This document shows, in pieces, positions 22,974 to 61,483 of a stretch of 64,000 nucleotides of DNA. How positions within the stretch are numbered: position 1 is the first letter of the stretch; each line of letters begins with the position of its first letter. Made by a program: the position numbers and the translations under genes. Where the stretch lies: assembly GCA_965649825.1 (NCBI GenBank), contig OZ287695.1, positions 1 through 64,000 on the forward strand, written 5' to 3'. Source of the stretch: Penicillus capitatus. Lineage: Eukaryota; Plantae; Chlorophyta. The notes under the pieces were generated by a model, which saw nothing but the letters and a program-made list of their open reading frames with translations, was not told the DNA's origin and made no database searches.

Positions 22974-23297
22974 GTGAAAGATAGTCCTGTACTGGATTTT
23001 AGAGCTGGAAAGCACATCGATTATGTGAAGAACGGGAATGTCCACGTATACACGACTCCTGATGTCGGACTTGTAACAGCAGAAGAAATCTGTACTGTTC
23101 ACAGAGCACAGAGGCAGAGAGTCCGTCCCGCTCTCTTGACAGATCATGAAAGAATGGCTAGACAGAAGAGACCCCTAACCTACCTGCTTCATGGTCAGCA
23201 ATTGCAGACTGACATCTGCCGCACGAACATTGATGATCTTCCCAGAAGATTCCCTAAAATGAGCCAATTGTTGGCATATCTTCAACAGACCGTATGA
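22974..23297 (+). CDS. Hypothetical ORF (about 107 codons, no clear ATG start), unknown function
   Basis: Open frame with protein-like composition (DSPVLDFRAGKHIDYVKNG...); no motif recognised. Confidence 0.2.
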   Translation: MKDSPVLDFRAGKHIDYVKNGNVHVYTTPDVGLVTAEEICTVHRAQRQRVRPALLTDHERMARQKRPLTYLLHGQQLQTDICRTNIDDLPRRFPKMSQLLAYLQQTV

Positions 23298-23461
23298 TCC
23301 TGATCTATGTATGCTAACCGCACCGTGCCCGCCACCGTAAATGCAGACCGTATGATCCTGATCTGTGCTAACCGCACCGTGCCCGCCACCGTAAATGCAG
23401 ACCGTATGATCCTGATCTGTGCTAACCGCACCGTGCCCGCCACCGTAAATGCAGACCGTAT
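23286..23461. repeat. 54-bp tandem repeat, three copies plus a partial
   Basis: cagaccgtatgatcctgatctgtgctaaccgcaccgtgcccgccaccgtaaatg at 23286 (58 bp, 4-nt insertion), 23344 and 23398, partial at 23452. Confidence 0.95.
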
Positions 23462-34273: not shown

Positions 34274-36467
34274 AGGATTTCGCCCATTAATGCCATGCAT
34301 TTAAAGCCGTCGCTTCCGTCGAGTGGCTATTGCATCATGTCATCGGCAGAAGAGAAGTTTCACGCTCTACTGACACGCATCGGCTATCAACCGAATCGCG
34401 CCGTTATCGCCAACCCTTCCGTCAAGACGCCGCTCTGGCCGAAATCCTCCCGTGGATCGCTGAGAACATCACGGACGCGCACATTCTCGATCCTGAACTG
34501 CGTCACGACTATGCGTGCCTCGAAGGACGCCTTTCGCACCCACTGGATCCCGTACGTCCCTCGACGCACGAATACCCATCGCGGCATGTTGAACTGGGTG
34601 GAGTAGGAGGACGGAACGGTCGCGCTGAGCGCAGTCGTTTCGCTGGACGATGAAGAGATGAAAGCATTGGACGAAACGGAGGCCGAATTGGAGGATGAGG
34701 CGAGGCAGAGAGAAAAGGAAAGGGCATTGCTGCAGTCTCTAGCCGACCAGCTCTCAGAACAGATTCAATCGACTAAGCAAAAGTGCGACCTTACACTCTT
34801 TGAGAGAACGAGCAGGAATCGTGTGTGCCAGATTGAACTATGCTTGCAAAGAGGATCGTGTGTTTGCGTGTCCCCTTCTTCGAGCCTCGGAAGAAAAGGC
34901 GACGCTCAAATTCCACGAACTGTCCTTGCAGTTCACTGTCTTTTCCTCCATCTTGCGTGACTTCTTGGAACTAACGAAAAAGCATGGAGCGGAGATGCAT
35001 TTCACCCAGTGCCGCGCTCAGGAGTACTGGAAAAAATCGGAGGACCTTACAAACAAACTCGAGCGGTGAGGAGTGCATGATGTCTCGGAGAGGCAGAGAT
35101 GGGCGTTCGCAGGATGATGCACGACATGATTGCCTCGGAGCATCAGCCAACGCACAGAAATCATCGACTGGATCAATGGTTACAGTTTTCGAATCTCGCA
35201 CAGCAGCCGTGGTTTCTCGAGATCGAACGGTTACGGCAACACAAACAGGCGAGGGGAGTGAAACGCAAGCGCGCTTCTTGAATGAGGTGCACGTGCAGGT
35301 GGCGGCAGTGCATCAGGTTGAGGTGCTCATGTCAAGGAGCAGAACAGACGCAAGATATCGTTTCGTCAAGCAGGCTGCCGAAGATTTTGTACAGAACCCA
35401 GGTATGGCTCACTCCGCACGACAGATCTGTAACGATGCTTCTTGTCGAGGCGTGATTTCTGGATGGAAAAAGATGTCGAGTGCACAAAGGAAGAGTGAGA
35501 ACGCGAAGCTGGCATCACAGAAGAGAGCACAGATGAAGAAGGTCACGTCGCTTCTGCTGGCGACAAACAGACACGTGGGATTGGAGACAACGAGGGAGTA
35601 CCTGACTCGAATCTGCGCGGAAGGGAAGAGCATCTTGATTCGAAAACAAGAGTTCCTGCATCATGTCTGTCGCCATTTGAGCAGACACAGAGTCTATACG
35701 GTGCGTAGGCGATGCCCATATGTGCACTCTCCGGATGTTCGTGTTCGAAGATTTTGGCAGAGATCGAGAAACAGAGGGTCGAAGACATGGTGCTGTATAT
35801 ACACAACCTCGATCAGACCTTCCGGAATGCGACATCGATCATACGATATCGAACAAAGTGTATGGAAAAAAAGTCACAGGCGCCAACCGATTCTATTGAT
35901 CCGAATGATCGATACCTCCAGTCGTTGGCGTCACTGATCAAGGCAAGTGTGTTGTCTGTCACAGAATGTGTGTAAGGACCCCTGTGTGGTGACAGTTCTG
36001 TACGGAGAGGATAGAGAGCAGTCCACAAGTGACATGGTCTATAACGAAGCGTGTGAGTGAGCTCAAGCGTCAGTACTCCAGTTCCTTCTCCGAGACGCCC
36101 GTGAGAGGCCGTGCCGCATACAGTCTCACTCCTGTGTCCAAACTCATCAAAGAGCAACAAGACAGAGCAAAGAAGGTGTGCCTTGGAGATCCCGAGCGTC
36201 CCACGACGCCAGTCGAACACGAAAACAGCCTCCGTCGGCTGTCCGTCCAAGAAGAAGCGTCGCCAGGACTGTCGCTTTTCAAAGATACTCCTGCACAGGG
36301 CGACAGCGACGCCCCCATTCCTTTTCATGCGGTGACCCTTCAGGCCGGCCGTCTGTTGGCATACCCTCTGGCGTCGCACCAAACCTTGACATGTCTCCTC
36401 TCAGATGTGCTCCGATCTATCGTCCAGCCCGAGGTCGAAGCCGTGCAAGGAATCTTCCGACGTGCGT

Positions 36468-36700
36468 TGTTGTGGCGGGGCGGCCGCTCGAACGATCAAT
36501 GCAGCGGAAGTCTTTACAGGCTCGGAGCAGAAGCATTTCAAAGTTCAGAATCGCACATTTATACCCGCAAATTGATGTGACTCACCGAGGCAGGTTCAAA
36601 CACCACAGAAACACGCCTCAGATGAGTCATCAGTGTCTCTCTGCGCGATGAACCCTTTCACCACAAGACAGAATGACATGACCCCTTGTCGAAGACAACA
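36468..36700 (-). repeat. 3' LTR (233 bp)
   Basis: Same sequence as 39854-40086. Confidence 0.97.
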
Positions 36701-36704
36701 TGGG

Positions 36705-36716
36705 CCCACCCCTTTC
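36705..36716 (-). promoter_or_regulatory. Putative polypurine tract
   Basis: Minus strand GAAAGGGGTGGG, 4 nt before the 3' LTR. Confidence 0.6.
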
Positions 36717-36770
36717 GCTTGCGTATACTCCGAAAGCAGGTAAAACCCCCACGAAAAACAAATAATCAAA

Positions 36771-37178
36771 TCAGTCTATGCCCGAGGTGAATCGTCGCAG
36801 CGCCGAGAAGATGGTCCAGCCCGAGGATGATGATTCTTCTGTGTTCGGTTCCCCCGCTCTCTTCTGAGAATCCGATGTCGTCGGATTCGATGACTCAACC
36901 ATATCTGTAGTCCGCACTCGCGGACAATCCTGTGCCAGGTGCCCCTTACATCGACAGCTGTAGCAGATCCGTCCGCGTCTCATGGCTCCTCCGCCATCGT
37001 CTGCCGCGTCGGCCGTCTTCTCTCTTCGCCGTCGCCGCGGATACCGCCCAACGTCGTGCAACACTCGTTTCATCTGTTGCAAAGTCTTTTCACTTCGTCG
37101 ATTCCCCTCTGGTTTCTTCGCCATCAACTCGGTTGTCGTCCTGACATCCCTTTGTAGCGTCTTCACCTCGTCGGCCAT
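36771..37178 (-). CDS. ORF-C of the LTR element: 135-aa basic protein with one CCHC zinc knuckle
   Basis: ATG-started intact ORF containing CYSCRCKGHLAQDC (CX2CX4HX4C). Confidence 0.7.
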   Translation of the reverse strand: MADEVKTLQRDVRTTTELMAKKPEGNRRSEKTLQQMKRVLHDVGRYPRRRRREKTADAADDGGGAMRRGRICYSCRCKGHLAQDCPRVRTTDMVESSNPTTSDSQKRAGEPNTEESSSSGWTIFSALRRFTSGID

Positions 37179-37260
37179 CCTTTTTTCCGTACGACACTTT
37201 CGTTCTGCCGCGTTTAAAAACCTTGCTGAACGACGGTATCCGCACGCACGTACGCGAACG

Positions 37261-38679
37261 ATGCAGCCCTCAGGCTCTCAGCCCGGAGGTCCTGACACCG
37301 CCCCCGACCCGGTGCGCACGGCGGTGGCGCAGGCCGCGAACACGGTCCGGTACCGGCGCGACCTGCGCCAGTCCCCCGAGGTACTCGAAGCCATGAGCAA
37401 GAAGGAGCTCATACTCGTCAACACTGCCCTCCAAGCTTGTCCCACACATATCGCTGCGTCCGTGGAACCAGCCACGCTCACCCTGAAGATCCGAGAATAC
37501 CTGGCGGCGCATGAAAAGAAAGACGAAGCCCAGCTAGTTTTAGTGAGAAGACTTGAGAACCTGTGCACCCAGCTTCTCCTGGCACCAGAAGCCCCAGACT
37601 TGCCCGTGGGGGAAGAATCAAACACGGTATCCCTCTGCCGCTCCAGAAAATCGGTGCCGCCGAGCACCTTCCTCAGAGCACTCTCTGATGACCTCCACTT
37701 GGCCTCCGCGAAGATGTCGTCTGTCTCGCCGGTCATACACGCAGAACTCCCGTATCTCGCTAGCAATTTTTCCCAGGCTCTCTCCTCGATGCAGGAGATA
37801 CAAACCTGCATGATGTTCTATCACAGCATCACGGATTGGACACCGACTGCTCTGCAACCCACGCCCCCTGCTCCTGCGAGTAGAGTCCCAGCAGCAACAG
37901 TATCCGAAAGTGCTATTCCTCAATCGTACCGGGATGCTGCCCGAAAAGCCCCGCCCACAAAGACACCGGCACAACTGCAATGGAACGCTCAGGCCAGAGA
38001 ACTAAGGAAGAAAACCCAAGAGCTCAAAGCTCAGATCAGATGTGATGAGCGCAGCTTCCAATTCTGTCCAGTGAAGCTGAAGGGAGAGCGCCCGTCGTTC
38101 CGTCAGCTCGGAATCAGCTTGGAGCGGAAGCTCAAGATTAGTAACTTTAAGGAACACGTGGAAGATATCCGAACAGACCATGGAGGCCGTTATTATGTAC
38201 AAATCCGCGCCGATCTGCGGGAGTCCTTCGAGAAATCGCTGGATCGCTGCCTGGAATGTGCAGGAGATACCTGGGATCTCGAGCTGCCGGATATCGGTAC
38301 GTTCACCGTGAACAACCCATACCTCTCGCTAACCAAAGACAAAGTCCCTGTGGTCATCAGCAATGTCGATCTGGACATAGACCCGGAAGCCGCAATCTCA
38401 GCCATATCCGAACAGAATGCTTCTCGCTGGCAGATCCCCGCGCCTCAACTTGCAGAAGAACACTTTGCAGCTCCGCACCGATTGAATCGCCGCAAACGTG
38501 ACTCTACCGGACAGCCCCTCCCGGAATGGACACCCAGTAGGAACTTGAAGGTCTTCGTGTCGAAGACTCTCCACGAGCAACTTAAGGACCACAAGACCGC
38601 GTTCGCCACGTTAGACTACATGGTATTACCCATCCGCTCGTTTGCACGGTTTCCCAACACCTCCCGAAGAGCTTCCTGA
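37261..38679 (+). CDS. ORF-B of the LTR element: 472-aa protein resembling non-LTR retrotransposon ORF1 but lacking the terminal zinc knuckles
   Basis: Intact ORF from ATG 37261. SYRDAARK, VVISNV...QN...HRLNRRK...SRNLKVFV...LDYMVLPIRSF recalls the pre-knuckle region of LINE ORF1 proteins (by eye). Confidence 0.6.
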   Translation: MQPSGSQPGGPDTAPDPVRTAVAQAANTVRYRRDLRQSPEVLEAMSKKELILVNTALQACPTHIAASVEPATLTLKIREYLAAHEKKDEAQLVLVRRLENLCTQLLLAPEAPDLPVGEESNTVSLCRSRKSVPPSTFLRALSDDLHLASAKMSSVSPVIHAELPYLASNFSQALSSMQEIQTCMMFYHSITDWTPTALQPTPPAPASRVPAATVSESAIPQSYRDAARKAPPTKTPAQLQWNAQARELRKKTQELKAQIRCDERSFQFCPVKLKGERPSFRQLGISLERKLKISNFKEHVEDIRTDHGGRYYVQIRADLRESFEKSLDRCLECAGDTWDLELPDIGTFTVNNPYLSLTKDKVPVVISNVDLDIDPEAAISAISEQNASRWQIPAPQLAEEHFAAPHRLNRRKRDSTGQPLPEWTPSRNLKVFVSKTLHEQLKDHKTAFATLDYMVLPIRSFARFPNTSRRAS

Positions 38680-38858
38680 CCCAATCTACCATAGCGGACT
38701 CACACTGAGCTCACTTCTCAATTGCACCTATTACTAACCTGCTTAGCCATTCCGATTCTCATTCGTCATCAGCATTAGCCTGCAACTGCCGTTTCTACTT
38801 TGCTCAGCACTATCCGTTCAAGCGTGGTCTATCCTGAAATTTAGTCCTACCTCCTTGG

Positions 38859-39713
38859 CTAGGAGGCTAAATATAGCCGCCTCATGTGCAAGGCTCGTTG
38901 GAACTGTTCCCGGCCAGACCACCCGCCCCGTAGTTGTCGGTCTGGTTTCGATGAGTGTTTTTGGGCGGTTTTTACACAAATGGCGAGACACACCCTTACA
39001 ACCAACCCATAGCTTGTACATGTCAGTCCAATATGCCTCTGGCGAATGGACTTTAAGCCTCGATTAACACACACCTCGTCGGCCAGTGACTGTAGACATG
39101 GCACCAAGTCAGGTGCCGAAATATACTTCTGTTTCTCCTCTGCGAAGGCGGATTCCGTCTCTTCAAGCCTCTGTTTCGTGGAGGAGGCTTCCTCGATAGC
39201 CTCGTTTGCATCCTGGTGCGCCTTGTTGATGTCTTGTTTTGCTTCGGAAATGTCCTTCTGCAGTTCTGCGTTGATGGCCGCAAGTCGCTCGATTTCTGCT
39301 GTCGCCTCGGCTACCTCGCGTCGTAAAAGCTCGACCGACAGTCCCCTTGCAATACCACTTGATTCGGAAGCCTGCAGCGTCGCTTGTAACTCTTCCTTCT
39401 CGTCTCGCAAATCTCGCTTTTCCCGAAGCCATTTCTCCTTTTCGTCTTGCAAGTCTCGCCGTTCTTTCAGCCGCGGACAAATATTCCTTAGAAACTCAAA
39501 CATGCAATCTTCGTCTACCAACAAGTAGGAAAAATCGTCGTTGTGATCATCTGGCTGTATCCAAACGCGAAAACCGTGAAGTCTGGGGCACAGCCCTTCG
39601 TCTTGACCAAAATACGCAAAGAGACTTTCCTCGTAACCGCGTATACCATAAACCCCGTGGCTGCCACCCTCGACGTGACCCTGCTCCCTTCTTCTTTGTC
39701 GTGCTCGACTCAT
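38859..39713 (-). CDS. ORF-A of the LTR element: 284-aa protein with a long coiled coil (Gag position)
   Basis: Intact ORF starting about 130 bp after the PBS; E/K/A-rich heptad region KERRDLQDEKE...AFAEEKQKY. Confidence 0.7.
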   Translation of the reverse strand: MSRARQRRREQGHVEGGSHGVYGIRGYEESLFAYFGQDEGLCPRLHGFRVWIQPDDHNDDFSYLLVDEDCMFEFLRNICPRLKERRDLQDEKEKWLREKRDLRDEKEELQATLQASESSGIARGLSVELLRREVAEATAEIERLAAINAELQKDISEAKQDINKAHQDANEAIEEASSTKQRLEETESAFAEEKQKYISAPDLVPCLQSLADEVCVNRGLKSIRQRHIGLTCTSYGLVVRVCLAICVKTAQKHSSKPDRQLRGGWSGREQFQRALHMRRLYLAS

Positions 39714-39841
39714 CCTTGACAATTCGCTTCTCGAAATTCCTTGTGCCTAGGTGTGCCTAGTCAGGACTCAACGGGCGCAAAGCACACAGCAAATGCGCAA
39801 CGTCACACAGACGGAGTTCAAACTGAGGAACGTTTAACAAC

Positions 39842-39853
39842 GCTCCGAAACCA
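39842..39853 (-). promoter_or_regulatory. Primer-binding site TGGTTTCGGAGC
   Basis: Directly follows the 5' LTR on the minus strand. Two mismatches to the canonical plant initiator-Met PBS TGGTATCAGAGC; identical to 59952-59963. Confidence 0.8.
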
Positions 39854-40086
39854 TGTTGTGGCGGGGCGGCCGCTCGAACGATCAATGCAGCGGAAGTCTT
39901 TACAGGCTCGGAGCAGAAGCATTTCAAAGTTCAGAATCGCACATTTATACCCGCAAATTGATGTGACTCACCGAGGCAGGTTCAAACACCACAGAAACAC
40001 GCCTCAGATGAGTCATCAGTGTCTCTCTGCGCGATGAACCCTTTCACCACAAGACAGAATGACATGACCCCTTGTCGAAGACAACA
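39854..40086 (-). repeat. 5' LTR (233 bp)
   Basis: Same sequence as 36468-36700. Confidence 0.97.
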
Positions 40087-42559
40087 GCGTTTCACACCGG
40101 AGATGCATCTGTTGCTCTATCGATACCATCACTACAGCCAGCGCTAGAATGCGTCGATCGACTGATACAGGAGCTCAATCAGAGCAGTCGAGCCATCAAG
40201 GAGGCATTCAAGTCTCACGTGGCTTTTCTGGAGAGACACCCAGGCGAGGCACAAGCACGAAGACTCATAGCACAGTTCTTCACAAACGTTCTTGAACGTA
40301 GACAACGTGATAGATGACAAGTAGATGGAGATAGGAATGCTTTCAATGTACCATCTTTCGTGCCGTTCTGGAATTGGTGCTTGTTCTCTGGCCACGAACG
40401 CGCAAGTGCTTCTCGTGCCGATTGCCGCGGTAACTGTCAATCGACTTCAATCGACCGATATTCGCTCGAACCTTACGCGTTAGCTGCTGACCTGTGAGGA
40501 TACCACTCTCTGCGATGGTCTTAATCAAAAGAGTGATTTTCGCTTCGCTCAGACGCATGAGTCGAATGTCAGGCTTATTCCGTGTTGATGACACAAACGA
40601 TCTGCCGTTTCGATTCTAATCCCTTTCACGCGCCAGTGCATCGCACACCATCTGCGTGCTCTTTACCCTTTGAGCTAAATTCATGGAATGCAACGTCATG
40701 AGAAAAAAGGTAAGCGTCGGAGATTCGATGGCGTCGAAATGCCCAGACAACGACGACAACGAGGATTGGGAGACGGAAATCGACGCCGGTCATCTCGCTC
40801 AGCTGTCATCCACACCGTCTCGCCGTCCTTTGGCGGCGTCGGTAGGCGATAGGCTCAACTGCACGTGAAGCTCCGAGTGCACCACGTCGACGACGCGACT
40901 AACAACTTCGACATGAGTCGCACCATTCACTGCAAAACGGCCCGCCAGAACAGTCGCCTCCGACTGAACAGGCTTGTCCGCGCAGCTCGCAGATGCTGTG
41001 GAACGACGTTCCATCCACGACTAGTGGTTTTTCTTGTCTTCATGCAATGTAGGTAACGCATGGGTCAGTCGCACCACCCAAATAAAGTTCTTTGCGTTGT
41101 TATGATCATTTGCTGTAGTTTCATACAGTCCCCGCTCTCACCCCTAACGTCTTGAATCCGTGCTTCCATTCGTTAGCGTGTTTTTCATGGCAGTGTCCTT
41201 CGAAATAGTCTCAGCAAGACGTCTTGAATCCGAGTCTTGATCATGAAATCTTCGAGCGGCGGGGCTGCCGACCTGGAGCAATCAGCCAGTTGCGGATACC
41301 AATCGTCTTCTCAAGCTGTGAGCCAGCTCCTATATGACGAGACGATGATCCATTCGATTCCGAGTGCGACCGCCTCGGCATTCGACTGAAGTCCAAGACC
41401 ATTACTGCCGCTGTCGACGACGTGCGCTTCTTTCCTGTGTTGTGAAATGGATTGGATCGAGCCCAATCAACGAACTGTTTGGGCATGAGCTCGATGGCTG
41501 TTCCATCGTTTGGACCTTTGAAGAGTTTTTTGTTGAAACAGTAAAGGAGAGTTGTTTCTTTGTCAATCGAGGAAGCAGGTGTGCCCATGAAACTCACCGA
41601 TCGGTGTTGCCATTTCCTGTTGATGCCGGCTGTCACGTCGTCCTCTGCCAGAGCGATTTCTGTTGCTTGAACGGCCACGTCAGTGTCGACTGCTTATAGC
41701 GCTGAGCTTTGCGATACCGCTGTCGACAGGACGTCGTGTCGGAATGGAGACGCCTGTTGTTGTCGCTACGCAGTCTGGTGATCACTTCCGATCGATTCCG
41801 GTGTCACGCTGTGGCGAGTTTCGCTTCCGCCGGGCCCTGCAATGGTCGATGGCATCTTCGCTCAGGGAAATCGTCAAGCAACGCGAGATAGGGATTCCGC
41901 TTCTGCCTGTAAACGCAGATTCGACAAGGTCGACGCAGTTACAGGGAAGAACGCCATCCTAGGCGCAAGTGCTTGTCGAACAGGTTTGTATTTTAGGCTC
42001 GCTATCATCAGGTAGATCTCTCATCTTGAGTCGAATCTTCGCGTTGCTGCGCAGACGCAGATTCGCATTTCGAGGAATGCAAAGGCTTCACCTATACAGA
42101 AACCAAAGATTGGACTTGGTCGCGTTTTGTAATGACGTTATGTGCAGATCTGTAGATACCTAGGTGATGGAGTGGGAACAGACAACACCAGGCGTCATGG
42201 CCAACTGCTTGATGAATTCCTTGCATCCTGAATTCCATATCTACCCACGTTAGTAAATGTAGAGTGAGATTGTCAGTGGCGCTTGTTGATCGTAACGCAT
42301 ACTGCATGCGTATTTGCAGCGGATGGAGAGTAAAGCATCCGGCGTCGCTTTGGCGCCACGAGAACGTCTGTGTCGCCGTCTTATGCGTTCCCTGGGCGGT
42401 CACCTCTCTTGAGAGTCTCGTCCCAGTTGCCGCCGGTCCTCTCTCGTCAACTCGCGGCACTTCCGAAAGGCCACGCATAGGCCATAAAAGACGGAGAGAA
42501 TGCACACTGCCGTTGACCTGCCGCTCGAAAGCAGAATTCAGTGCTCGTCGAGTAAGAAC

Positions 42560-47235: not shown

Positions 47236-48523
47236 ATGCTGCCTACAACCTCGACGATGTCTTACGACACCGATCCACTGTTACCCTGTCGAATGGAGGA
47301 CGTTGAACAGGTTACCGGGTCGGTCAAGTCTTCAACACTGTGCGCAACCAGTAGATATGTCGACGTTGTCCTCACCGTATCCGAGGAATCGATTTCAGGG
47401 AATTGGCAACAAGACTTCAGTAATGGAGCATGTGGTGTTAAGCGCGAGACACTTCTATCGAGATATACCCAGTAAAGAACGATTGATCCCAGACAGAACG
47501 AACGGGTGGATGCTTCATTCAGGGTGTTCTGGAATAACTACGTGTGCCTATCACTCTCGGCTGCTGTTGGGATTTCCATCTCGATGACTTTTTTCAAATT
47601 TCTTTCTGATCGAGTCCCTATCTTTCAGGGCCTCGCTGCGAGATCGGTCTTCTGCAGCGTCATGCTTGTGCTGCTGTGTCGGCAGCAGGGAATCTCCCTC
47701 TTTGAACCACAGAAGAAGCTCCATCTCCTGATTTTTCGTGGAGTATTAGGCGGTCTTTGCAACACAGGACTCTACGTCTCGTCAGCTTTGCTCCCTCTCT
47801 CAGAAGCAGCCTTCATGTCAAACAGTTTCCCAGGTAAGAGATCAAAAAATGACAAACGGTAATGGTTCTCTGTGTAGCGGTAACGGCCGTCTTCTCCTGG
47901 ATCTTGGGTCTTGAACAGTTGGGTTGGATATCATGGCTAGGCGTTCTAGGAACCATCGTTGGCAATGCATTGGTGGCACAGCCTTGTTTCCTCTTTGGAG
48001 GACACAAAGAATGGGACACCGAACGGCTCTTGGGTATCCTTGCTGCTGTTGCCGGTAATGTATGCATGGCAAGCGTATCGATTATTCTAAGGTGAGAACT
48101 CGCGCACTATGACTGGCTGAATATATGCATTTTGTTTTCAGATACATTGGCAAGGGTGTGAACAGCATGGTTCCAACCGCTTACATGCATATAAGCACTC
48201 TCATCATATCACTTCCGTTGATGGCCTGCAACGTAACTGGACCAGTGAATGCCAAACACTCGATACCTGTACTGATTTCGTACACTGTTGTTTGTGTTGC
48301 TGGCTTTGTTGGTCAGTTGATCCAGTCACGTGGTTTCCAAATAGGTCCTCCAGCCAAGACAACAACACTCCTGATGACCCACACGCTTCTTTCTGGACTC
48401 ATTGGAGTCATCTTTTTTTCTGAATCTGTTTCATGGCTCACTGGTTTCGGAGCAGCGGTGATTGTGATCTCCGCAATCTTGGTGACAGTCGCACATTCAG
48501 AAGATTCAGCAGTCGAAGAATAA
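47236..48523 (+). CDS. EamA/DMT-family transporter (SLC35G-like); introns 47834-47877 and 48092-48141; 5' end uncertain
   Basis: About ten hydrophobic segments with motifs LIFRG, LPLSEA...FPAVTA..SWILGLEQ and GQLIQSRGFQ. The two GT-AG introns (44 and 50 nt) join the frames. An in-frame TAA at 47473-47475 separates the upstream ATG (47236) from the TM region. Confidence 0.8.
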
Positions 48524-51045
48524 TACCAGCATGGAGAAATCACGAGAGAAACTAAGCAGCCGAATCAACTTTAGACTGGACTTTATTGGGAAATTTATTC
48601 AGTCTCCCATAGCTAAGCTAATCTAGCCGTTTCATTTTAATCGTACCTTTAACTAGCTGACGTTAGTTCTTTGTCGATATCCGTCCTCAGGGGGCGATAC
48701 CTTTTGAAAAAACGTCATGATTCTCCAGTGGATTGGTGCGAACGACTGCGCAGCCTCTCTCCCACGTGCTGCGCCCGACAGTCGCGTTCCCACCTCTTCT
48801 TGGATGAGCCGAATAGGATGGTCAACAAGAAGATCGATTCGCGGTGGTTGAGTGGCTAAACAGCACGATGAGCCAGCCCCCTCAGACGGTGTGGCTTAGA
48901 TCGCGTTTATAAGATGTAGTTAGGTTAAAAATACCGACGAATGGTTAAATCCAACGCAGAAACTCCTTTGAAGAAAACATCTACGATTTGTAAGTGTCTT
49001 ATCTCGATAACGGAGTCCATGAGATTGTTGTAAGAAATGTCCCGGCCTCATGCGCTTAATCCTTCAAGTTTTAGATTTCTACATTCAAGAAAATGATCTC
49101 TGTTTTCGGTCTTCTTGTGGCAAACGGAGCAACTTTGTGAACCTAAGTGGTTGATTTTGTGAAGAAATCTCTCTGTTTCAGGCGAGTTAACGAAAATAGA
49201 CGGGCCGACTCACTTCTCTATGCTTTAATTGCCGCGAATTTTCGTCGGCTGCGAGTCACGTGGAGAAATGCATGGCAATAATAACTCCTAAGTAAAGGCG
49301 CATATAAGAGAATTATCGCACTCAGATACACAGAATGCCAGATAACACCTCCCAAGACCCATGCAGAAACGCATGCCTGCCACTCAAACTTATGTCACGA
49401 CGGAGCATAGACTGGAAGTCATCGTCCACTGCCCTGACAACGTCTCGAAAAGACATAGCACAAGAGTGTCTTCACGACAAGAACTAGGCGTCTCTTCGCA
49501 ATGCGTTTCCTCTCCTCTCTTGCATTGTTTTGCAAAGACGTCACTGTTGTCGTCAATTTGCATTAGGGATGTTACACGAGGTAAGAACTCTTGAGCGATG
49601 ACATTGAAACTGCACATTTTTATGAAGGTGGTTCGAAGAGAAACCAAATAACCACAGCCTGATTCGCCTGTGCTTTTTTGGGAAGAGCCGCTGCATAAAT
49701 CATTGTGGAACTGAAGGTTTTTGCACAAATTATTGTTGTAGGTGCACGAAGAGATGAGACATGAAACTCGTCAATCAAAAGTTCTCTTAAAACACACGCC
49801 GTTAACAAATGCATCACTTAAAAGAATTGCAAATGAGGCATACGGAAGACTTCGTTCACTATTGCAAAACAAAAAAGCATCGCTCACAAATTCTATTCTC
49901 GTACTCATATGCCATGCGTCCCCGTAGTCACAGAGGATTTGTGAAAGGACCTGTCTACGACACATCGGTCGTCACATCCGAGGTCTTCCCTGTCGCATCG
50001 TCCATGACATCCTGAGGCACTGTGTTCAGCAATCTGTCAATTGCACCTTGAGAAGCCACGACGAATTCCCTGCCACGAACATTGTACGCTATGGAGAGTA
50101 CAGATAGGATTGAGACGCAACGTTGGATCTCGTTTTTCTTCTTGATTCCGCGAGGCGCGAAGAAGATATCTATCAAATTTCTCGACGGAGCGATTGACGT
50201 CTTTGAGCAGGGCATCCGATTCAGCCGATGTCTCTAACTTCTAACAAAGAAGAGCCTCATGTCGTGAAGAGTGACAGTCTCGAGGTGGATCCCACTCACT
50301 TCAGCATATTCTGCCACGGCTCTGGCGTTGAGTCGTAGAGTTGACAGGGATCCCTCTCTCAATAGACTCCTTGCTGCATCCAAGTCATTCCCTTAAACAC
50401 ACCAATCGAAGGGATGAGATGCAGATCGGCAACCGGTTTTGACAGAACCGGCGACTTTTCCTGCGCGCTCGAGTTCGGATTTTGCAGCAAGCAATGGCAA
50501 GACATAGACTTGCAACGGCTCCAATGGTCGTTTTTTGATGTACTGGTTAAGTCCCGAAGCGTCCTGTCCATTCGACATTCAGCAGGTCGCTGTCCTTTCT
50601 ATCGTGGAGAGAACGGCGTCAAAAGGAGATGCGAAGACAAAGAGGGGAAGAGACAAAAGAGCAGCACCGGAACGTACGAACTCTGCCCGCGTCATCTGGC
50701 TAATGTCCTTCCGGGCCGACGCAATCCTCTGCACCATTTCCATCTTTGACTTTAGATATGTCGTCTCGTGCTACACGTCCTTACCGAGGCGGTACGGTGT
50801 CGGCAGGCCGGTAAGTATGAAGATCGCCACGAAGGGAGCTGGACCAACGTTGAAGCCATAGCCCAGTGATACGGCGTATAATTTCCCAGTGGTCAGCGGG
50901 CAATCTGATGTGACCTTACTGAATTTCGTTGTTGCGATTGGACAACGATGTCAGAATTAGGAAACGGCTAAGAACCTCCTAAACTGCATTTAAGCCACGT
51001 GTCCTCCTTTCTTACTCTGTGATTTGCCTCGTCGTTTTCTGCAAC

Positions 51046-52222
51046 ATGGCGAAACGTTTGTGTTTTTTGGCTGCACTGCTTTTTCTGAACGGCGTGTTTT
51101 CGGAAACGAAGCTGCAGCCCCTTGATACCAAAGAAGTCAAACTCGAACCTTTCAGCGCTATCAACGATTGTCTGCCATTCAATGTCAAAGTCGAACCCAC
51201 CAAGGTCAGAGACGCGTATGGCCTGTCTATCGAGGGAGAAAAATCTCTGGTCAAAGCCATTAGCGCCAAAGTCCGCAACGGCGTATTGTCTCTGGGTCTG
51301 AAGCGCGAGTTCGAGACACAACGTATCATAAAAGTGACTGTTCAAGTTCCGAGAGATGTGCTGGACGCTATTGTGAAAACGTCAACATCGGTGCTCGTTG
51401 TCTCGCCCGGTTTGAAAACAAAGGGACTGACCATTATTACGTCCAGCGTGGCAGCCGTTCGCGTCTTCGATGCAGACATCGATGATTTGGTGGTTGAGGC
51501 GAACGGTTCCAGCATCGTTTTCGCAGAAGGAAAAATAAAACAGGCACGAGTGGATGTTGACGGAACTGCCAAGACATATGTCTATGGCGTCACCAAAAAT
51601 GCAGAGGTGTTTGCCGAGAGCATTGGACACATCTACATCCGAGCAGACAACAAGAATGTCAAAGTCGATGGACGTGTGGAGGGATTGGGTCGTGTCTATC
51701 TCACTAAAGGCAGCTGTTCCGTCGACGGCGTACGTCTTACCTAAGAATCCGCATTCAATGATGCCTATGATGTGTATGTAGACATTCTTCAGATCTGGCT
51801 GCCATACGTTGGTGGAAAACAGTCTGCCGGCATTCGAGGCGACATACAGCTGCGGATTGGTGGTGAATGGAAAGATTTCGTGTAACAACAATGGCACCAG
51901 TTCCACATACACGTCATCCAGAGTGGACCACCAAGCAATGGGATCTTCCTTCGTTTCGTCCTCTTCTTCTTCCAAGTCATCCGGATCGAGCACCGTGCAA
52001 ACGAGCAGTACTGTGAGTTCGAGCAGCAAGACATCGTTTGCCAGTTCTGGCGGAGGGAAGACGAGCACATCAACCTCTACCACTACCAGCAGTTCCACCT
52101 CTGTTGGTGGCGATCATCATTTTGAGAGCGTCGTCTCTACAGCGGGAGACGATGCGGAGTCTGTGGCAGTGGCAGCGACGATGTGTCTCGATGAAGACAT
52201 TCAAATGTTTAAACAGACCTAG
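51046..52222 (+). CDS. Secreted protein with a GIN (DUF2807, putative autotransporter adhesin head) domain and Ser/Thr-rich tail: join(51046..51729,51782..52222)
   Basis: Signal peptide MAKRLCFLAALLFLNGVFS; FSAINDCLPFNVKV...LSIEGEKSLVKAISAKVRNGVLSL is the DUF2807 start pattern; a 52-nt GT-AG intron keeps the frame. Confidence 0.75.
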
Positions 52223-53099: not shown

Positions 53100-56000
53100 C
53101 TAGATGGTGCTAGTGGGGAGCAAGCTCTTCGTCGATTCTGAGCCGACAGCTTCCACCGCCACCGTATTGCGTCCGGAAGGCGATAACTTCGCCATGATCT
53201 TTCCGCTCAGGTTTCGCACTCTCTCCGTTTTGTGTCGAACATAAGCTTTCAGAACAGCGGCGACAACGCCGTTTCCCACGTCAACACCTTCGCAAAGAAG
53301 AGTGTGCTTGATTTCAGTGTATTTGTTGGTCAAAAGATGGTAACCGAAGATCGAGAAGGCGATCAGGTTACTCGCAAACACAAAGAGCACCTCAGTAAAC
53401 TTGACGAGTTCAGATGTCGTGTGAGGGTCAGTGAGAATGACACCCGACATGACTGTTGTTCCACAGACGAAGAGACTGAGCCCTTCGAGAAAATTCAAAG
53501 GTCCGGCATTTGTCTGGTAAGGTAGGAAAACGAAGTGAAGGAACATCGAACAGACAAAAATAGCAGTCAACAAAGTTGCCTGAAGCGCAACATCAAACTT
53601 GTAAGCAAACACAACAACTGCGGCAATTAAAGCTTTCCTGAGCAAAATAGTACAGTCCCAAAAAGCAAACTCGGTTTTGAAGCCATTCATAAGCATCCCG
53701 AGCGTCGACTGGATCCAGTCGGATCGCAAATTGCCTTTTTTATTTGCGATCGCCATCAAGACGGCCAACACAAGTGGATACACAATAACGAACACGAGAA
53801 GCGGAACGGCAACGACATAGGCAAGAACTCTGTGGCTGCCAGCATAACATGTGACAGACGTATCCGCAACCCAATAGGAATGAGGAGTATTGATGCCTTC
53901 AAGCGTGACTTCATCGAAAACATCAATGCAGTAGAAGACGTTAATGGCCGTCTCGGCCAGAGAGAGATAGGAAACGTACAGAACAGAGACGGCAGTCAAG
54001 ATGCACCTTTTGACGAAGAACTTCCAGGGCATGCGTCGGCTGACAGTCCTGATAGCCCAGAAAGAACAGATGACGGCAGTAACGGAAAGTGGGACGATCA
54101 CTGTGAGGGCAGTTTGTATGATGGACCCAGGAGTCGACCCACGAGCAGGAAGCAAGCATTCAAACGAGAACGTAGATACTTCAGACATGGTGCCACTGAT
54201 CCAATCTGCACACAGCGCGAAATGCGTCAATGACTCGTAAGGGCGTGTTTGCTCTTACTCCATGTCGTTAGCAGCTGAATGATGTATGTTGACCATTTGA
54301 ATTTTATCGACATCGCCGCAGAGATCGACTGCAGGAAATTCAGCATGATCTGCAGTGAAAGCTCGACATCTGATAATCAGAAGGAGGACTGATGCTTACC
54401 TGAAGCACAAGAACAAACCGCTCCTTCGCTTTCTGTGCCACTTCGACGTGTTCCTGATCGGCCTCTGCTCGGTTGATTACTTCAAGGATGGCTGCCTCTG
54501 TCGGCGTCGTTCGAAGCCGTTCCAGGCGGCTTACCCATCTCGATCTGACATTCTCTAGATTTCCGCCGATCTGTTCTGTGGAAGAATACGTCAGAAGAAC
54601 CATTGCGGCGGCGATGGCGAGCACAATCACAAAACGATTTCGACATTTCCGACACCGACTCAGTCCGATCTTTGCGTGGCCCTCTTCACAAGCTCCACAG
54701 AGAACACCTTCGTAGCCATCTTCGCACATGGCCGCTCGATAATTCTCGATCGCTTTATCTGAGAAGTCGCACGTGTCTCTCTTGTCTTCATCAACACGCA
54801 GACCTTTCTCACGGTAATTATCTTCGTCCATTCCAAGACAAGCATCTTTATACAAGCAGCGATAAATCTTATGCGAGCACGGAAAGGCGTTCCAGTTTCC
54901 GGGATCAGGAAATACATGTATTCCGGTGCAGTTGGCACTTGCTGGACAGATTGTGCAACTTCCATCTGTAGGGTTGAAGTTGTAGTGTCTTTGATCGCAT
55001 TCGATGCACTCCTTGTTGTCGTCTCGTCCGTATTCATTGATCACACACTCGCGAGCAGTGACTGTTAATGTGATGTCTCTATCTGAAACTCCATGTACTC
55101 CCAGCTTCGCAGAATAGTTTCCAGGTTCCACGAGAGGCGAACCCAACACAAGGTTTCCCTTTCCGTCTGTCAAATCACACACCAGATCATTCTGAAACAA
55201 CGAGTCTTCCGAGTGTAAGAGCGCCGTAATAGGAAAACCGTATGAGGTAACAGGAGGTTGACCTGGCGAAAGAGACACGGCCTCTGCGCTGGGCGACCGT
55301 GTTCGAGCCAATCTTTGTCCAAAGGAGTCGTACACCACGATCTCCATCAAGGGTAACTCATCGCCACTCTTCCAGGCTCCAAGGTCGCCGCTGTCTCCTT
55401 CAGCCAGAGAATGGTTCGTCTCGTTTTGAAAAGATATCGTGGCGAAGAATCCTGTTGAAGGAGTGGCAATGTTCGGTCCATAACCACCATCCTTCACTGT
55501 GTTGCCTTCCATATGTTCGCATTCTGCTGCAGGCAAGGAAGAGATCTTCGAGTAGACTGCGCTGGAAGACGTATTCACAGCCATAGTGCATTTCATTCTG
55601 AAATGATCGATATAGTCCGGGTATTGAATGAAAACTGCACCGCCAGCTATCTCGGCATGATTCTCAGAAAACGTCATGATTCCTATGCCCAGATCCTTCG
55701 GAAAGTTACGCATTGCTTCCTTTGGCATCTCAACATTGTTCTTATCGTCGGGTTTAACGGTTTTTTCCCCTGTGTCTATGAACAATCCTCCTGCAAAGAG
55801 AACACGTTATTGTCATCCGTTGCTAAGCAGGGATTAGCTTCTAACCTCCATAGGCTGCTCTGTTCTCCACAAATGACAACCAACCAAGAAACATGTACTG
55901 AAGATAATGACCTGTCGGTCCTGGCATTTTCATCAATGCGACAGCTCCTCCGTACAGAGTTGCGTTGTTTCTGACGAAGGAGCATTCATGAAGGTAGAAA

Positions 56001-58665
56001 ATTGTTGATTCGCTCGAGCTGATGGCCCCTCCAATCATCGCCGTGTTCTCCAGGAAAGTCACATTCCTCACCCTGGCTTTATGGACAAATGATCTACCAT
56101 CATCCACGCGCAGGGCACCGCCAAAAGATTGGGCACTGTTCCCATGGAACGTGCTGTTTGCAACCCACACTTTTTGGTAACTACCGACAAACAATCCTCC
56201 AGCCGTCTCCGCTTTGTTCTTCCGGAACGTGCAAAACTCCACGTTCATTCTATCGCTACCCCCTATGTACAAGCCTCCAGAAGTGTGTTCGGAACTATTC
56301 TCAATGAACGAGGAATTCCGGATCATCACGTGCATGCAATTAAGGATATAGAACGCTCCATTGGCCCTCCCACTGTTCTTCTGAAAGGTGCAGGATTCGA
56401 CCAAAAGTTTCGACCTGTCGCTTTGTGGCTCATATCGCACTGCAGCGCCAACATCTCCAGTGTTGTTGTAGAAGACAGATGTTTTAATCACCACAGAGTG
56501 GACTGTGTGAAAAAGAAACGCGCCACTTCTGGGAGCATAAAGTACGCGACCAGAAATGCTCTCCGGGTGCATATAGTTGTTCAATATCTGGCAATCATGC
56601 GCTTCAAAAGAATCCGCATTATCAACAAACAGACCAAAGCCTTCAAGATGGGCAGTGTTGTCAGTGAAATTACTGCGCTCCACACGGACGCTTTTTGCCC
56701 CAACAATGTAGACATTCTTCACATCACCGGAGTTTCCTCGAAAAAGAGAATCGGCGATTCTCAGATCGCTGCGTTTTCCCATGGTGTCGTTAAACAGAAT
56801 CACACGTCCCGTGCCGACACCAATATTCTCTAAGAATCTCGATTTCGAGATAAGGAAGTCGCCACCGCAATTAACAAAGTGCATCTCAGGCAGCTCAAGC
56901 GGGAAATGATTCTTATAAAAAGTGCAGTTCGTCATCGTAAACTCCACATGTTCACTTGATCTCATGAGTAAACTTCCACCGACAAAGTATTGAAAAAAAT
57001 CTAGGATATACCTGGATATGTACCACTTGATCTCATTTAATGAAAACGTAGTTGAATGCAATAACACGCGTCCGCTGTCGAATCCTGAAATCAGAAGTTG
57101 GATACCAAGGTGTTGCGCACTGAAAGAAGGGACTTCCCCGTTTCTCGAAAAGCGGGTGTTGGAAATATTCAATAGTGGATCTCGGTCATCGCATGTTCCA
57201 CTGACAAAAACAACGGAACCATTCGTCGCAGTGTTTCCCTCAAAGTTGGATGAGTGTATCTGCAACTCTCCGACATGAGTGGCGGCAACAAAAAACCCGG
57301 AATCGATCGTGTTATTGACGAAGCGCACGCGATCCAGTGTCCCATTGGACCCTTGGTACAAGGAGAAGCCCGAGCTTTGGTCTCTGTACTCGTTAGACTG
57401 GAACGAAACGCCACTGAGGTGGACTGCGCTTTCATAGGCGATGATCATCGCACTTCCTGCTATGTCAAGAACGTTGTGATGAAAACTCGATCTGCCTTCC
57501 ATCGTCAGTCTTGCCTCTTCGACGGATATCAGTTCCCCTTTATTCTTCTCGGCTATGACATTCACCAGTGTCGCTGTCGATGACTTGGGGAAACGAAAAA
57601 GAGCATAGAGAGCTGGATTCTCCGCAAAACGAAGTGAATTCTGCATGTGCCTAAGAACAAAGCGGATCGATAAAAGCTTCAGTGGCGACCTTTCCAACTC
57701 ACTTCTGACCCTCTTGCTGTTTCATGGTGTATTGGCTGGTCACATCCTGACCATCATTCGCGGATCCTGACCAGATCTGGACGTTCTCCGATAGGTGTAT
57801 GTTTTTGAGCTCGTTCTTCTGGCCAAACAATGAGCCGTGAAGAAATCTATTTGCACTGAATACGACGCCGTCCATAGAGACGGAGACGCAGCTTTGATTG
57901 CGGACAGAGAATCCAACGGAACCACCGAGATTCGTGTTGTTGACAAATTCGACGTTTGACAGCTCGAAGACAAAGGCTTCATCTGAGGCTGCGTCGCACT
58001 TGACGTCGATGATGCTGTCGACGGAATCGTCCTCGACGAACGAGCAGTCTCGGATGACAATATCTTCCAAGACGACGCTCGCGTTCCTAGACACGCCAAG
58101 TCCGCTGGCTGTGTGTTGCCTTGCGTGGAATACGCACTCGATGAGCAAAAGCCTGTCGTTCGAAGGACATGTCAACGTCGTTCTCGTGTCATCCTCTGTC
58201 TCCGTCCTTGCCTCGTCTGACTGGCCATGTCGAATCGTGAGTCGCTTTGTTATGGTGAGTGGCTTCGGCGGTCGAACAGTGCTAGAAGCGCTTATCCAAA
58301 TGACATCTCCGTCTTTTGCGCAGTCGATTGCGTCTTGCAAACCATATTCGTCGAGGAATGCATCGGCGACGTGCCATGTAGTCCTCGCGCCACCAGCTAC
58401 TTGATCGTCATTCGGTTGCAGCAAACTACATGCGGTGCCTAGAAACCAAATAAATCAGAAAACGCTCTCGTTCTCATGCAAAACGCGGCAAAGCTGATGT
58501 CGCCTTCGCGCATGGATTCTAGCGCGTTCAGCGTCGTAGCATCAAACAAGAGCAAGCGAGGTTCTTGTGCTGACCTTGCGAATCTCTTTCTTCCATCGTC
58601 AAAACGGCGACAAGACAGAGTGCCACGACGAAGCATTTGAAGACATTTGCACTACGTCGTGGCAT
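53100..58665 (-). CDS. 1739-aa membrane protein with right-handed beta-helix/POMP-type repeats, CxxC ephrin-receptor-like repeats and a multi-TM C-terminus: complement join(58665-58575, 58438-57703, 57650-55846, 55790-54400, 54349-54259, 54205-53100)
   Basis: Signal peptide; repeated FxxN..GGA(I/L/V) motifs (FHGNSAQSFGGAL, FLENTAMIGGAI, FVRNNATLYGGAV, FSENHAEIAGGAV); CIECDQ, CTICP and CGACEEG. Five GT-AG introns (136, 52, 55, 50, 53 nt) give a 5220-nt open frame. Confidence 0.85.
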
Positions 58666-59950: not shown

Positions 59951-61483
59951 ATGGTTTCGGAGCTCAAGTTTTTGACAACCGAGCGACATGAAGTTGAGAC
60001 GGCGATAAACGCGGCGTCTATGGTCGCCGACGGCTATCGGACGAGGGTCGGAAAACTGATGGAAAAAGTCGAAGTGGGCTCCCCCCTTTTCGAGCTTATG
60101 CGTCAGGTTACCGAACGAACCGAGCCCCATTTTGCAGACAAAGACGCCTTTAATGCGGCGTTTGTGGGGAGAGCAGCAGCTATCTCCAACTGTTTTCCTG
60201 CGAACAAAATGGTAGTCAGTGACGACGACAAGTGGCACGTTTTCAAGAGGACTCTGTTGGGCATGTGTTCGAACGCTGGAACGACTTCTGGGGAGCGTCT
60301 CGCAGGAGCGGCTAAGAAAAAATCAGAGACATGGCTTCAATTCGCGGAAAGGTTTGGCGTGTTAGCGGCTCAGTCGGGATTGGCAAGAGAGATGCAAATC
60401 AAGATTCTCTATGGAAAGCTGCCTGGTCACCTAAAGAGAGCGGTGTCAAGTTTGCCGACGACAACGACGATGAACGAAATGATCTTAATGATCAGAAACG
60501 TTACATTTTGGACTGGATCATCGTCTGCGGCTGAGGTGGACAGAGACGCGATGGACGTTGACATGGTAGACATGTGCGACGGTATTGGATGCGCGGTGCA
60601 TAAGGTCGACAACTTTGGAAGAGGAGGTTTGTCTCTAAGAGAGCTTTGCGATGCGATGAGAAGTGAGCTCACAAGGAATCCTCGTTTTGCGGGGATCGCT
60701 GAAGACATCTTGGGTCAATGGCGACAGAGAGGTCCGCAAGGACAATATTCGAACAACCGTGGACCAAGGAGAACCGGGCCAAGAAGACCGGCCGGGAATA
60801 GACAATTCCAACGGAACTGCTACCAGTGCGGTGAGTATGGTCATTCTGCCAGATTCTGTAGGCAGCGCTCACACCAAATCCGAGAGGCCCAACCTGTGCA
60901 CACCCATAACCAATTTGCACCACTCGCATCTTTGGAAGAGGAAGATGAGAGGGAAGAAGGAGGGTCGGTATTGTCGCTGAGCGTTAGTCAAGGAAAGAAA
61001 CCGTCGCCTCGTAAGGAAGAAGGCAAGGGCAAGAATGGAGGACAGGTCAAGTACATTGACTACCCCCGCGTAGATCAATCGTCCTCGAGTCGTCCACAGA
61101 AGGGAAAGGCATCACTAAAAGTGGTGACATACCTTGCCAATCGGCCAGAAAAGGAAAGCGCCTTGGTCGACACAGGAGCAGAAGTGTCTCTTCTCCCGCT
61201 CACGTATTGTCAACGATGGGGGATAAAGGTGAAAAGAGTGGAAAATACACACCTTCGTGGTTTCAACAATTCGACTAGCCAAGTGACGGGTGAAGTAGTT
61301 TTGCCTATTCGTATTGGGGGGTGGAATCAAGCTATTCCATTTTATGTGACCGATGCCACAAATAAGGTCATTCTGGGATACTCTGCTTTGAAAACTTTTG
61401 GAATCTCCGTGGATTGCTCTCATGACTGTTTGGTTGGAGGAGATGGACACGTGGTCTTCTGCCACTCCGTCTCGTCAAACTAG
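59951..61483 (+). CDS. gag: Gag-protease ORF (up to 510 aa)
   Basis: CCHC knuckle CYQCGEYGHSARFC; aspartic protease ALVDTGAEVSLL and ILGYSALK. Confidence 0.92.
   Translation: MVSELKFLTTERHEVETAINAASMVADGYRTRVGKLMEKVEVGSPLFELMRQVTERTEPHFADKDAFNAAFVGRAAAISNCFPANKMVVSDDDKWHVFKRTLLGMCSNAGTTSGERLAGAAKKKSETWLQFAERFGVLAAQSGLAREMQIKILYGKLPGHLKRAVSSLPTTTTMNEMILMIRNVTFWTGSSSAAEVDRDAMDVDMVDMCDGIGCAVHKVDNFGRGGLSLRELCDAMRSELTRNPRFAGIAEDILGQWRQRGPQGQYSNNRGPRRTGPRRPAGNRQFQRNCYQCGEYGHSARFCRQRSHQIREAQPVHTHNQFAPLASLEEEDEREEGGSVLSLSVSQGKKPSPRKEEGKGKNGGQVKYIDYPRVDQSSSSRPQKGKASLKVVTYLANRPEKESALVDTGAEVSLLPLTYCQRWGIKVKRVENTHLRGFNNSTSQVTGEVVLPIRIGGWNQAIPFYVTDATNKVILGYSALKTFGISVDCSHDCLVGGDGHVVFCHSVSSN
59952..59963 (+). 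promoter_or_regulatory. Primer-binding site TGGTTTCGGAGC
   Basis: Follows ...tttaacA; identical to the PBS of the 36468-40086 element. Confidence 0.8.

Follow-up and report, generated by a model that had tools for sequence, protein, structure and literature searches.

A three-frame LTR element very probably composed of two nested non-autonomous retroelements

The stretch of DNA analysed here, called the window in the following, comprises 64,000 nucleotides (nt) of contig OZ287695.1 and contains at positions 36468–40086 a long terminal repeat (LTR) retrotransposon whose sense strand is the minus strand of the window. The 3′ LTR (36468–36700, minus strand) and the 5′ LTR (39854–40086, minus strand) are 233 base pairs (bp) each and 100% identical, have TG...CA ends (TGTTG...ACAACA) and include a TATAAAT motif. 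Both ends of the element are bordered by GCGT (36464–36467 and 40087–40090), a 4-bp target-site duplication (TSD). A sequence resembling a primer-binding site (PBS), TGGTTTCGGAGC (39842–39853, minus strand), abuts the 5′ LTR in the sense orientation of the element, and a purine run, AAAGGGGTGGG, lies within the polypurine tract (PPT) region (36701–36720, minus strand; sense sequence GCGAAAGGGGTGGGCCCA) that adjoins the 3′ LTR. Three open reading frames (ORFs) are located between the LTRs: ORF-A (38859–39713, minus strand, 284 amino acids (aa)), ORF-B (37261–38679, plus strand, 472 aa) and ORF-C (36771–37178, minus strand, 135 aa), separated by gaps of 82 and 179 bp. ORF-C contains a zinc knuckle of the CX2CX4HX4C type with the sequence CYSCRCKGHLAQDC. 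Apart from a weak zf-CCHC match in ORF-C and generic coiled-coil matches, Pfam reports nothing in the three ORFs; in particular, no reverse transcriptase (RT), RNase H, integrase or protease was found. Most of these features had been described in a first-pass annotation of the window: sequence reading and comparison confirmed the identical LTRs, the GCGT duplication, the PBS and the PPT, the lengths of the frames, their gaps and the CCHC knuckle are as reported, and the lack of enzymes was borne out by Pfam. However, the same annotation counted three intact ORFs, and this is not what the comparison with a related copy revealed.

An intact copy of the element exists in locus L001 (contig ctg340286 of the ENA assembly ERZ25074695, the same assembly as that of the window). 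It is 1711 bp in length, possesses 233-bp LTRs (5628–5860 and 7106–7338), the TSD ACGT, the same PBS and PPT (the PPT region being identical in sequence) and one ORF of 344 aa, which accounts for 1035 of the 1711 bp. Both of its LTRs are 99.6% identical to the 3′ LTR of the window element. The encoded protein, P0007, was found by an exact-sequence look-up of ORF-C, whose 90%-identity cluster holds five further members of 343–357 aa on five other contigs. These proteins (P0005–P0009) consist of ORF-A residues 1–214 joined directly to ORF-C and contain ...VPCLQSLADEVKTLQRDV... and ...ISAPDLVPCLQSLADEVKTLQRDVRT.... An undivided protein of this composition, with 343–344 aa, is present on at least five other contigs of the metagenome assembly to which the window belongs. 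In tblastn searches residues 1–214 of P0007 matched window positions 39713–39072 (100%) and residues 210–344 matched 37178–36774, and neither half of the gene in the window differs from the L001 protein by a single amino acid. At the nucleotide level the window element aligns to L001 in two segments with 99.7% identity (blastn). In L001 the segments have 14 bp in common, whereas in the window 1894 bp separate them. The overlap corresponds to CACCTCGTCGGCCA, a sequence with a single copy in L001 but two copies in the window (37164–37177 and 39072–39085; the exact repeat was confirmed by a scan), and is therefore a TSD that identifies window positions 37178–39071 as an insert.

ORF-A and ORF-C are thus the halves of one 344-aa frame split by a nested insertion. 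The N-terminal part of this gag-like gene (residues 1–214, with a beta domain and the long coiled coil) occupies 39072–39713 on the minus strand, and the C-terminal part (residues 210–344, with the CCHC knuckle) 36771–37177 on the same strand. The ATG of ORF-C (37178–37176, minus strand) is made up of the last base of the insert and the TG of the duplicated target; the intact gene in L001 has a CTG (Leu) codon at this position and no ATG. Residues 215–284 of ORF-A, 70 aa in total, are antisense read-through into the 3′ untranslated region (UTR) of the insert. Accordingly, this copy of the LTR element has lost the ability to make its own protein, the gene having been inactivated by the recent nested insertion. 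In the exact-sequence look-up the complete ORF-A sequence was present on one contig only, and the same applies to ORF-B.

The insert (37178–39071, plus strand, 1894 bp), which is missing in the intact L001 copy and carries its own TSD, consists of a 5′ UTR (37178–37260), ORF-B (37261–38679) and a 3′ UTR (38680–39071). ORF-B has 22 homologues, about 20 of them in ENA assemblies at 43–83% identity; among those of full length the majority have an intact frame of 470–476 aa. P0030 and P0031, both distant homologues (E ~1e-21), are located directly upstream of ORF2s of 1174–1212 aa with Exo_endo_phos_2 and RVT_1 domains and are therefore the ORF1s of full-length long interspersed nuclear elements (LINEs). 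An ORF-B-type homologue directly upstream of an ORF2 for endonuclease and RT occurs in the four full-length LINEs L006, L007, L008 and L013; ORF-B residues 10–461, for example, align to residues 20–498 of the L006 ORF1 with E=2e-28 (blastp). An AlphaFold2 (AF2) model of ORF-B (mean predicted local distance difference test score (pLDDT) 63) comprises a helix (236–261), a beta-alpha-beta domain (265–332) and a second alpha/beta domain (339–441), and the best match of this model among PDB structures is the trimer of human L1 ORF1p (2ykq, E=0.01, probability 0.97, a weak match), followed by RNA recognition motif (RRM) domains. Pfam gave no Transposase_22 match in ORF-B and, for the ORF1s of the full-length LINEs, at most weak zf-CCHC and generic coiled-coil matches. 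Judged by its homologues, ORF-B can be classified as a LINE ORF1-type protein that belongs to the insert; the model places a long helix, an RRM-like domain and a C-terminal domain after a helical region at the N-terminus, and the predicted structure gives weak but consistent support to this assignment.

Relatives of the insert are found at other loci. Besides the window, ORF1-only copies exist in L003, L004, L005 and L009 of the same assembly and, with 40–54% identity, in L012 of the assembly ERZ26696514. The 5′ end and the ORF of the window unit are 80–83% identical to the independent copies L003–L005. The closest relative of ORF-B that was found reaches only 83% protein identity despite the very recent insertion. 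All six units (6/6) are bracketed by exact TSDs of their own of 14–15 bp, where an estimated ~0.001 exact 14-mer matches per copy would be expected by chance. They share a conserved 5′ end, TCTTTTTCCGTACGACAC...GTTTAAAACCCTTG, which is similar to the starts of the full-length LINEs L006–L008, and have lengths of about 1.6–1.9 kb; in the five other copies the unit ends 123–132 nt past the stop codon. No similarity to ORF2 was detected in or beside the six units by tblastn with ORF2. With six units that have their own TSDs and conserved ends and no ORF2, the ORF1-only state is therefore the normal form of the family. The ratio of nonsynonymous to synonymous substitutions (dN/dS) between its copies is 0.15–0.23.

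A full-length LINE with a similar 3′ end was found by a search with the L006 ORF2 in the assembly that also contains L012 (ERZ26696514). This element, L013 (3490–8914, ~5.4 kb), has a 5′ UTR of about 30 nt, a 14-bp TSD (ATAGTACTCTGACG), an ORF1 of 494 aa (3520–5004) and an ORF2 of 1232 aa with endonuclease and RT (5001–8699), the two ORFs overlapping by 4 nt. Its ORF1 matches P0027 with E=6e-37 and ORF-B with E=2e-19. C-terminal CCHC knuckles, which are present in the ORF1s of L006–L008, are absent from the L013 ORF1. The units in L003, L004 and L012 have their 3′ tail in common with L013: over its final 56 nt L013 shows 86% identity to the L003 unit, and it matches L012 with 85% over 39 nt. 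The tails of the ORF1-only units are composed of a hairpin followed by (ATT)n, A5 or ACACA, and a poly(A) is missing. In an alignment of seven sequences 90.5% of the cells of the 6-bp hairpin are paired, in comparison to 57–69% when the partner strand is slid; two pairs are compensatory, and the covariation score was reached by 3 of 500 shuffles. In view of what is known of LINE partners with a common tail, the shared tail, the length of the TSDs and the homologous ORF1 suggest that the LINE lineage to which L013 belongs supplies the ORF2 protein that moves the ORF1-only family in trans.

Several known systems are comparable. HAL1 (half-L1) of mammals contains ORF1 only, which has stayed able to code for protein over tens of millions of years (Bao and Jurka 2010, as reported in PMC3627910). 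HAL1 resembles the ORF1-only family in that ORF1 is kept, ORF2 is lost and the frame stays open over a long divergence, which implies a cis-encoded ORF1p together with an ORF2p supplied in trans. However, HAL1 belongs to the L1 clade, whereas the ORF1-only family has no Transposase_22 match and is not assignable to that clade; furthermore, HAL1 ends in poly(A), whereas the units described here end in a hairpin with a short (ATT)n or A5 tail and have TSDs held tightly to 14–15 bp. The telomeric element HeT-A of Drosophila (Jockey clade) is likewise described as "ORF1 only" (bioRxiv 10.1101/445429). Both are non-LTR elements that encode only a Gag or ORF1 protein and obtain RT from related elements, but HeT-A targets chromosome ends and makes no TSD, whereas the ORF1-only units are dispersed with TSDs of 14–15 bp, and there is no sequence relationship between the two. 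Pairs of short interspersed nuclear elements (SINEs) and stringent-type LINEs provide a third parallel, since the last ~40–56 nt of L003, L004 and L012 are shared with the full-length LINE L013. In contrast to SINEs, the ORF1-only units are protein-coding, have a LINE-type 5′ end and no Pol III head, and the tail of the window copy has diverged.

The outer element also belongs to a family: its 344-aa protein has 32 homologues with 41–99% identity, nearly all of 300–400 aa and none of them fused to pol. Two more distant intact elements have one ORF each: L011 (68% aa identity) is 1790 bp in total with 265-bp LTRs that are 100% identical, and L010 (53% aa identity), situated on a 6.9-Mb contig with 344x coverage, is about 1.83 kb with LTRs of about 250 bp. 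Both have 5-bp target duplications, the same 12-nt PBS TGGTTTCGGAGC and a purine-rich GGCGGGAAGCGTGG at the equivalent position upstream of the 3′ LTR. The intact copies L001, L010 and L011 thus measure 1.7–1.83 kb and possess a single sense ORF and no pol, and dN/dS between these subfamilies is 0.35–0.46. A sequence search found no further copy of the LTR or of the whole element elsewhere in the window, and among all fetched loci LTR matches were confined to L001 and the window's own contig. An Rfam scan of the window gave no matches, and the tRNAs in the loci examined did not match the PBS. A third match to the PBS at window position 48442 was taken as chance; it lies inside an ordinary-looking coding stretch and has no LTR.

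The AF2 model of the gag-like protein (mean pLDDT 67) shows a small beta domain (20–66), very long helices (68–122, 127–196, 200–229 and 239–253) and a basic, disordered tail that carries the knuckle. The protein is predicted to bind RNA and to multimerise. A profile of the family was compared with 1.84 billion representative proteins: full-length matches form a small family of at most ~380 aa, and all the rest match at the knuckle only. BLASTP of the gag-like protein against two gypsy gag-protease proteins likewise revealed similarity at the knuckle only, and profile searches with the gag-like and ORF-B families against PDB sequences found only coiled coils and retroviral nucleocapsid knuckles.

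As the first-pass annotation proposed, the outer family is young, pol-less and non-autonomous and encodes its own nucleic-acid-binding CCHC protein. It is TR-GAG-like. The TR-GAG elements of plants (2015, PMC4350172) are likewise smaller than 4 kb, have LTRs, PBS, PPT, TSD, one sense ORF and no pol, occur in multiple copies whose identical LTRs point to ongoing activity, and must borrow Pol. However, their Gag is related to that of Copia and Gypsy, whereas the outer family has an orphan protein with coiled coil and CCHC knuckle and no capsid-like fold, and with 1.7–1.8 kb it is even smaller. A second comparison concerns TRIMs and LARDs, which also are LTR elements without pol that need autonomous partners. 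TRIMs and LARDs are non-coding, whereas the outer family keeps its ORF (dN/dS 0.35–0.46).

Since the outer element has no pol, it depends on the enzymes of an autonomous LTR element for reverse transcription and integration. Two Ty3/gypsy-like elements share the PBS TGGTTTCGGAGC. One is situated in the window (PBS at 59952), where its 5′ LTR ends with ...TTTAACA at 59951 and an ORF for a 510-aa gag-aspartyl-protease protein extends over 59951–61483; this element, a candidate Pol donor, seems to run past the end of the window. The other lies in L003 (2571–7464, PBS at 7277–7288) and is a compact 4.9-kb element with 173-bp LTRs that are 100% identical. The presumed source of Pol is an element of the Ty3/gypsy type with this PBS in the same genome.

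Taken together, the region 36468–40086 very probably represents two unrelated non-autonomous retroelements, one nested in the other, and the three-ORF layout an accident of this nesting. In the proposed course of events the 1711-bp LTR retrotransposon (LTR, PBS, 344-aa ORF, PPT, LTR) would have been reverse-transcribed and integrated by the enzymes of an autonomous LTR element, entering the minus strand with a 4-bp duplication; its ORF encodes a small beta domain at the N-terminus, a long coiled coil, a basic stretch and a single CCHC knuckle. After the integration or shortly before it, the 1894-bp LINE-derived element would have inserted in the opposite orientation into codons 210–214 of the gag-like gene by target-primed reverse transcription, with a duplication of 14 bp. 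This nested element encodes an ORF1p-type protein but neither endonuclease nor RT, and its family would be moved by an ORF2 protein that a related full-length LINE supplies in trans and that recognises the short 3′ hairpin and tail. ORF-A (214 genuine and 70 read-through residues) and ORF-C with its junction-made ATG would be the two pieces into which the insertion divided the gag-like gene. Nesting of transposable elements (TEs) within one another is commonplace.

A number of observations weigh against parts of this interpretation. On the side of the outer element, a Foldseek search with the gag-like model against PDB and BFVD returned nothing below E=0.4, no Pfam gag family matches the full gag-like protein and no capsid domain is detectable in it; the protein is gag-like by position, zinc knuckle and coiled coil, and not demonstrably a capsid-type Gag. 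The two Ty3/gypsy-like elements, when tested as partners, proved to have only the 12-nt PBS and the TGT...ACA termini in common with the outer element and no similarity in LTR or gag. With respect to the insert, L013 originates from a different sample (ERZ26696514) than the window. Furthermore, the 3′ UTR of the window unit (392 nt, 38680–39071) has about three times the length of that in the five other copies and is unrelated in sequence. It does not align with the tail common to the other copies and L013, and it ends in ...GATTAACACA, with ACACA in place of (ATT)n or A5; its hairpin, GTCCA...TGGAC followed by TTTAAG, is only analogous. A 3′ transduction as the source of this long UTR was considered and rejected, the canonical tail not being present internally. 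Neither a master copy nor a partner LINE was found for the window unit. Finally, the identical LTRs are compatible with nesting before as well as after the integration at this locus.

The first-pass annotation had regarded the three genes in two orientations as the normal constitution of an LTR family with a packaging or anti-silencing module, and the open and tightly packed frames, the identical LTRs with an intact target duplication and the purifying selection on ORF-B among its relatives are what such a family would show. This view is nevertheless extremely improbable. Every other member examined has a single uninterrupted ORF (the single sense ORF of L001, L010 and L011 contradicts the layout as a family feature), a 14-bp duplication brackets the ORF-B unit, the ATG of ORF-C is a junction artefact and the tail of ORF-A is read-through; in addition, the relatives of ORF-B, a LINE derivative, reside at unrelated loci with duplications of their own and outside LTR elements, and the composite was found once only. 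A one-off nested insertion of ORF-B, named beforehand as an outcome that would contradict the proposal, is indeed what the locus contains, but the ordinary gag-pol expected along with it in other copies of the LTR is missing. A search for copies revealed related LTR elements, none of which, among those examined, had the three-ORF layout; dN/dS proved not to be neutral (0.15–0.23 for ORF-B, 0.35–0.46 for the gag-like gene), although for two separate families; and the structural comparison led to L1 ORF1p (2ykq), weakly, for ORF-B but to nothing in PDB or BFVD for the gag-like protein. The composite is a one-off, seen once, and not a new gene layout.

Two further explanations accept the nesting as such or the LINE origin of ORF-B. 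The LINE unit could have entered a source copy elsewhere, from which the 3.6-kb whole was copied to the present locus with gag-like protein and Pol supplied in trans. The 100% identical LTRs and the intact 4-bp duplication agree with this, sister copies with an intact gag-like gene could supply the protein, and an insert in antisense orientation would presumably avoid premature termination of the LTR transcript; but no second copy of the composite turned up in the sequence collection looked up, and the element is so young (no aa differences to L001) that identical LTRs are expected either way. As nesting after integration requires one event fewer, a transposition of the whole composite is considered unlikely. 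Less probable still, and very improbable in itself, is that the ORF-B unit stands for a family of host genes that arose by domestication of a LINE ORF1, comparable to L1TD1 of mammals, and that one mRNA of this family was retro-copied into the LTR element as a processed retrogene. Intact ORFs at 63–83% identity with dN/dS of about 0.2, the lack of ORF2 in all copies and the recurrence of the ORF1-only form at 40–54% identity in another sample would fit a host gene, but a coding capacity of long standing is also known for HAL1, as related in PMC3627910. Moreover, the six copies are found at unrelated loci with their own 14–15-bp duplications exactly at the conserved 5′ and 3′ termini, the 5′ end is like that of full-length LINEs and the 3′ tail is common with a full-length LINE. 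The own TSDs, the LINE-like 5′ end and the shared tail therefore indicate repeated retrotransposition of the whole unit.

On the reading as two nested retroelements, each part adds a new member to a kind already known, the outer one TR-GAG-like and the inner one HAL1/HeT-A-like. The locus illustrates that tightly packed, bidirectional and intact ORFs inside an LTR element can arise from one nested insertion, and that the start codon of an ORF can be made by an insertion junction. It further brings together two non-autonomous coding retroelements of different classes, each of which keeps only its nucleic-acid-binding protein, and this supports the idea that nucleic-acid-binding proteins act preferentially in cis, while RT, endonuclease and integrase can be borrowed. 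Whether one eukaryote, probably a microbial one, harbours two independent and long-lived lineages of half-retroelements, a gag-only LTR lineage based on an orphan coiled-coil/CCHC protein of non-capsid type and an ORF1-only LINE lineage (the latter in at least two genomes, down to ~40% protein identity), both under purifying selection and served by enzymes in trans, seems at present evenly balanced. If true, the supply of an RNA-binding protein in cis would be a general and repeatedly evolved strategy beyond plants (TR-GAG), mammals (HAL1) and Drosophila (HeT-A). The ORF1-only family together with a full-length LINE that shares its tail offers a workable system for tail recognition and for the cis-preference of ORF1p outside mammals.

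The neighbourhood of the element is rich in repeats and TEs, including a 20-kb satellite array and the Ty3/gypsy-like element mentioned above. The satellite array (1–20338) is built from a 178-bp unit in about 100 copies with 93–96% matches, has 61–64% GC and a strong positive GC skew and is interrupted at ~700–2550, where the units measure 55/56 bp and 28 bp. The satellite array may belong to a centromere or a subtelomere, and 16 kb separate its edge from the LTR element. A short tandem array of a 54-bp unit (3.2 copies, 96% matches) occupies 23286–23461. When the LTR element and one GCGT are removed, 36029–36467 joined to 40091–40317 restores an open frame of 233 codons across the insertion site, so the target of the element may have been a coding exon or an older repeat. 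Its flanking sequences showed no similarity to any fetched locus. Neighbouring genes in the fetched loci encode E2F/DP, U1-70K and a eukaryotic uS13, and the host is therefore a eukaryote; compared with solved ribosomes, the uS13 gave much the same score for many entries. In L003 the ORF1-only unit (7913–9551) is situated 450 bp from the Ty3/gypsy-like element (2571–7464), and the TEs of this genome appear to cluster.

The remaining part of the window contains an ORF at 51019–51744 with a bacterial-type DUF2807 domain (adhesin head GIN domain, E=5e-18) and, next to it at 53100–58424, four contiguous minus-strand ORFs (376, 481, 618 and 241 aa) whose matches to NosD/beta-helix and DUF7630 are weak. 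These four could be parts of a single large gene that is interrupted by introns or frameshifts and may have come from bacteria. The first of them overlaps a tRNA-Asp(GTC) called at 53220–53302 (minus strand).

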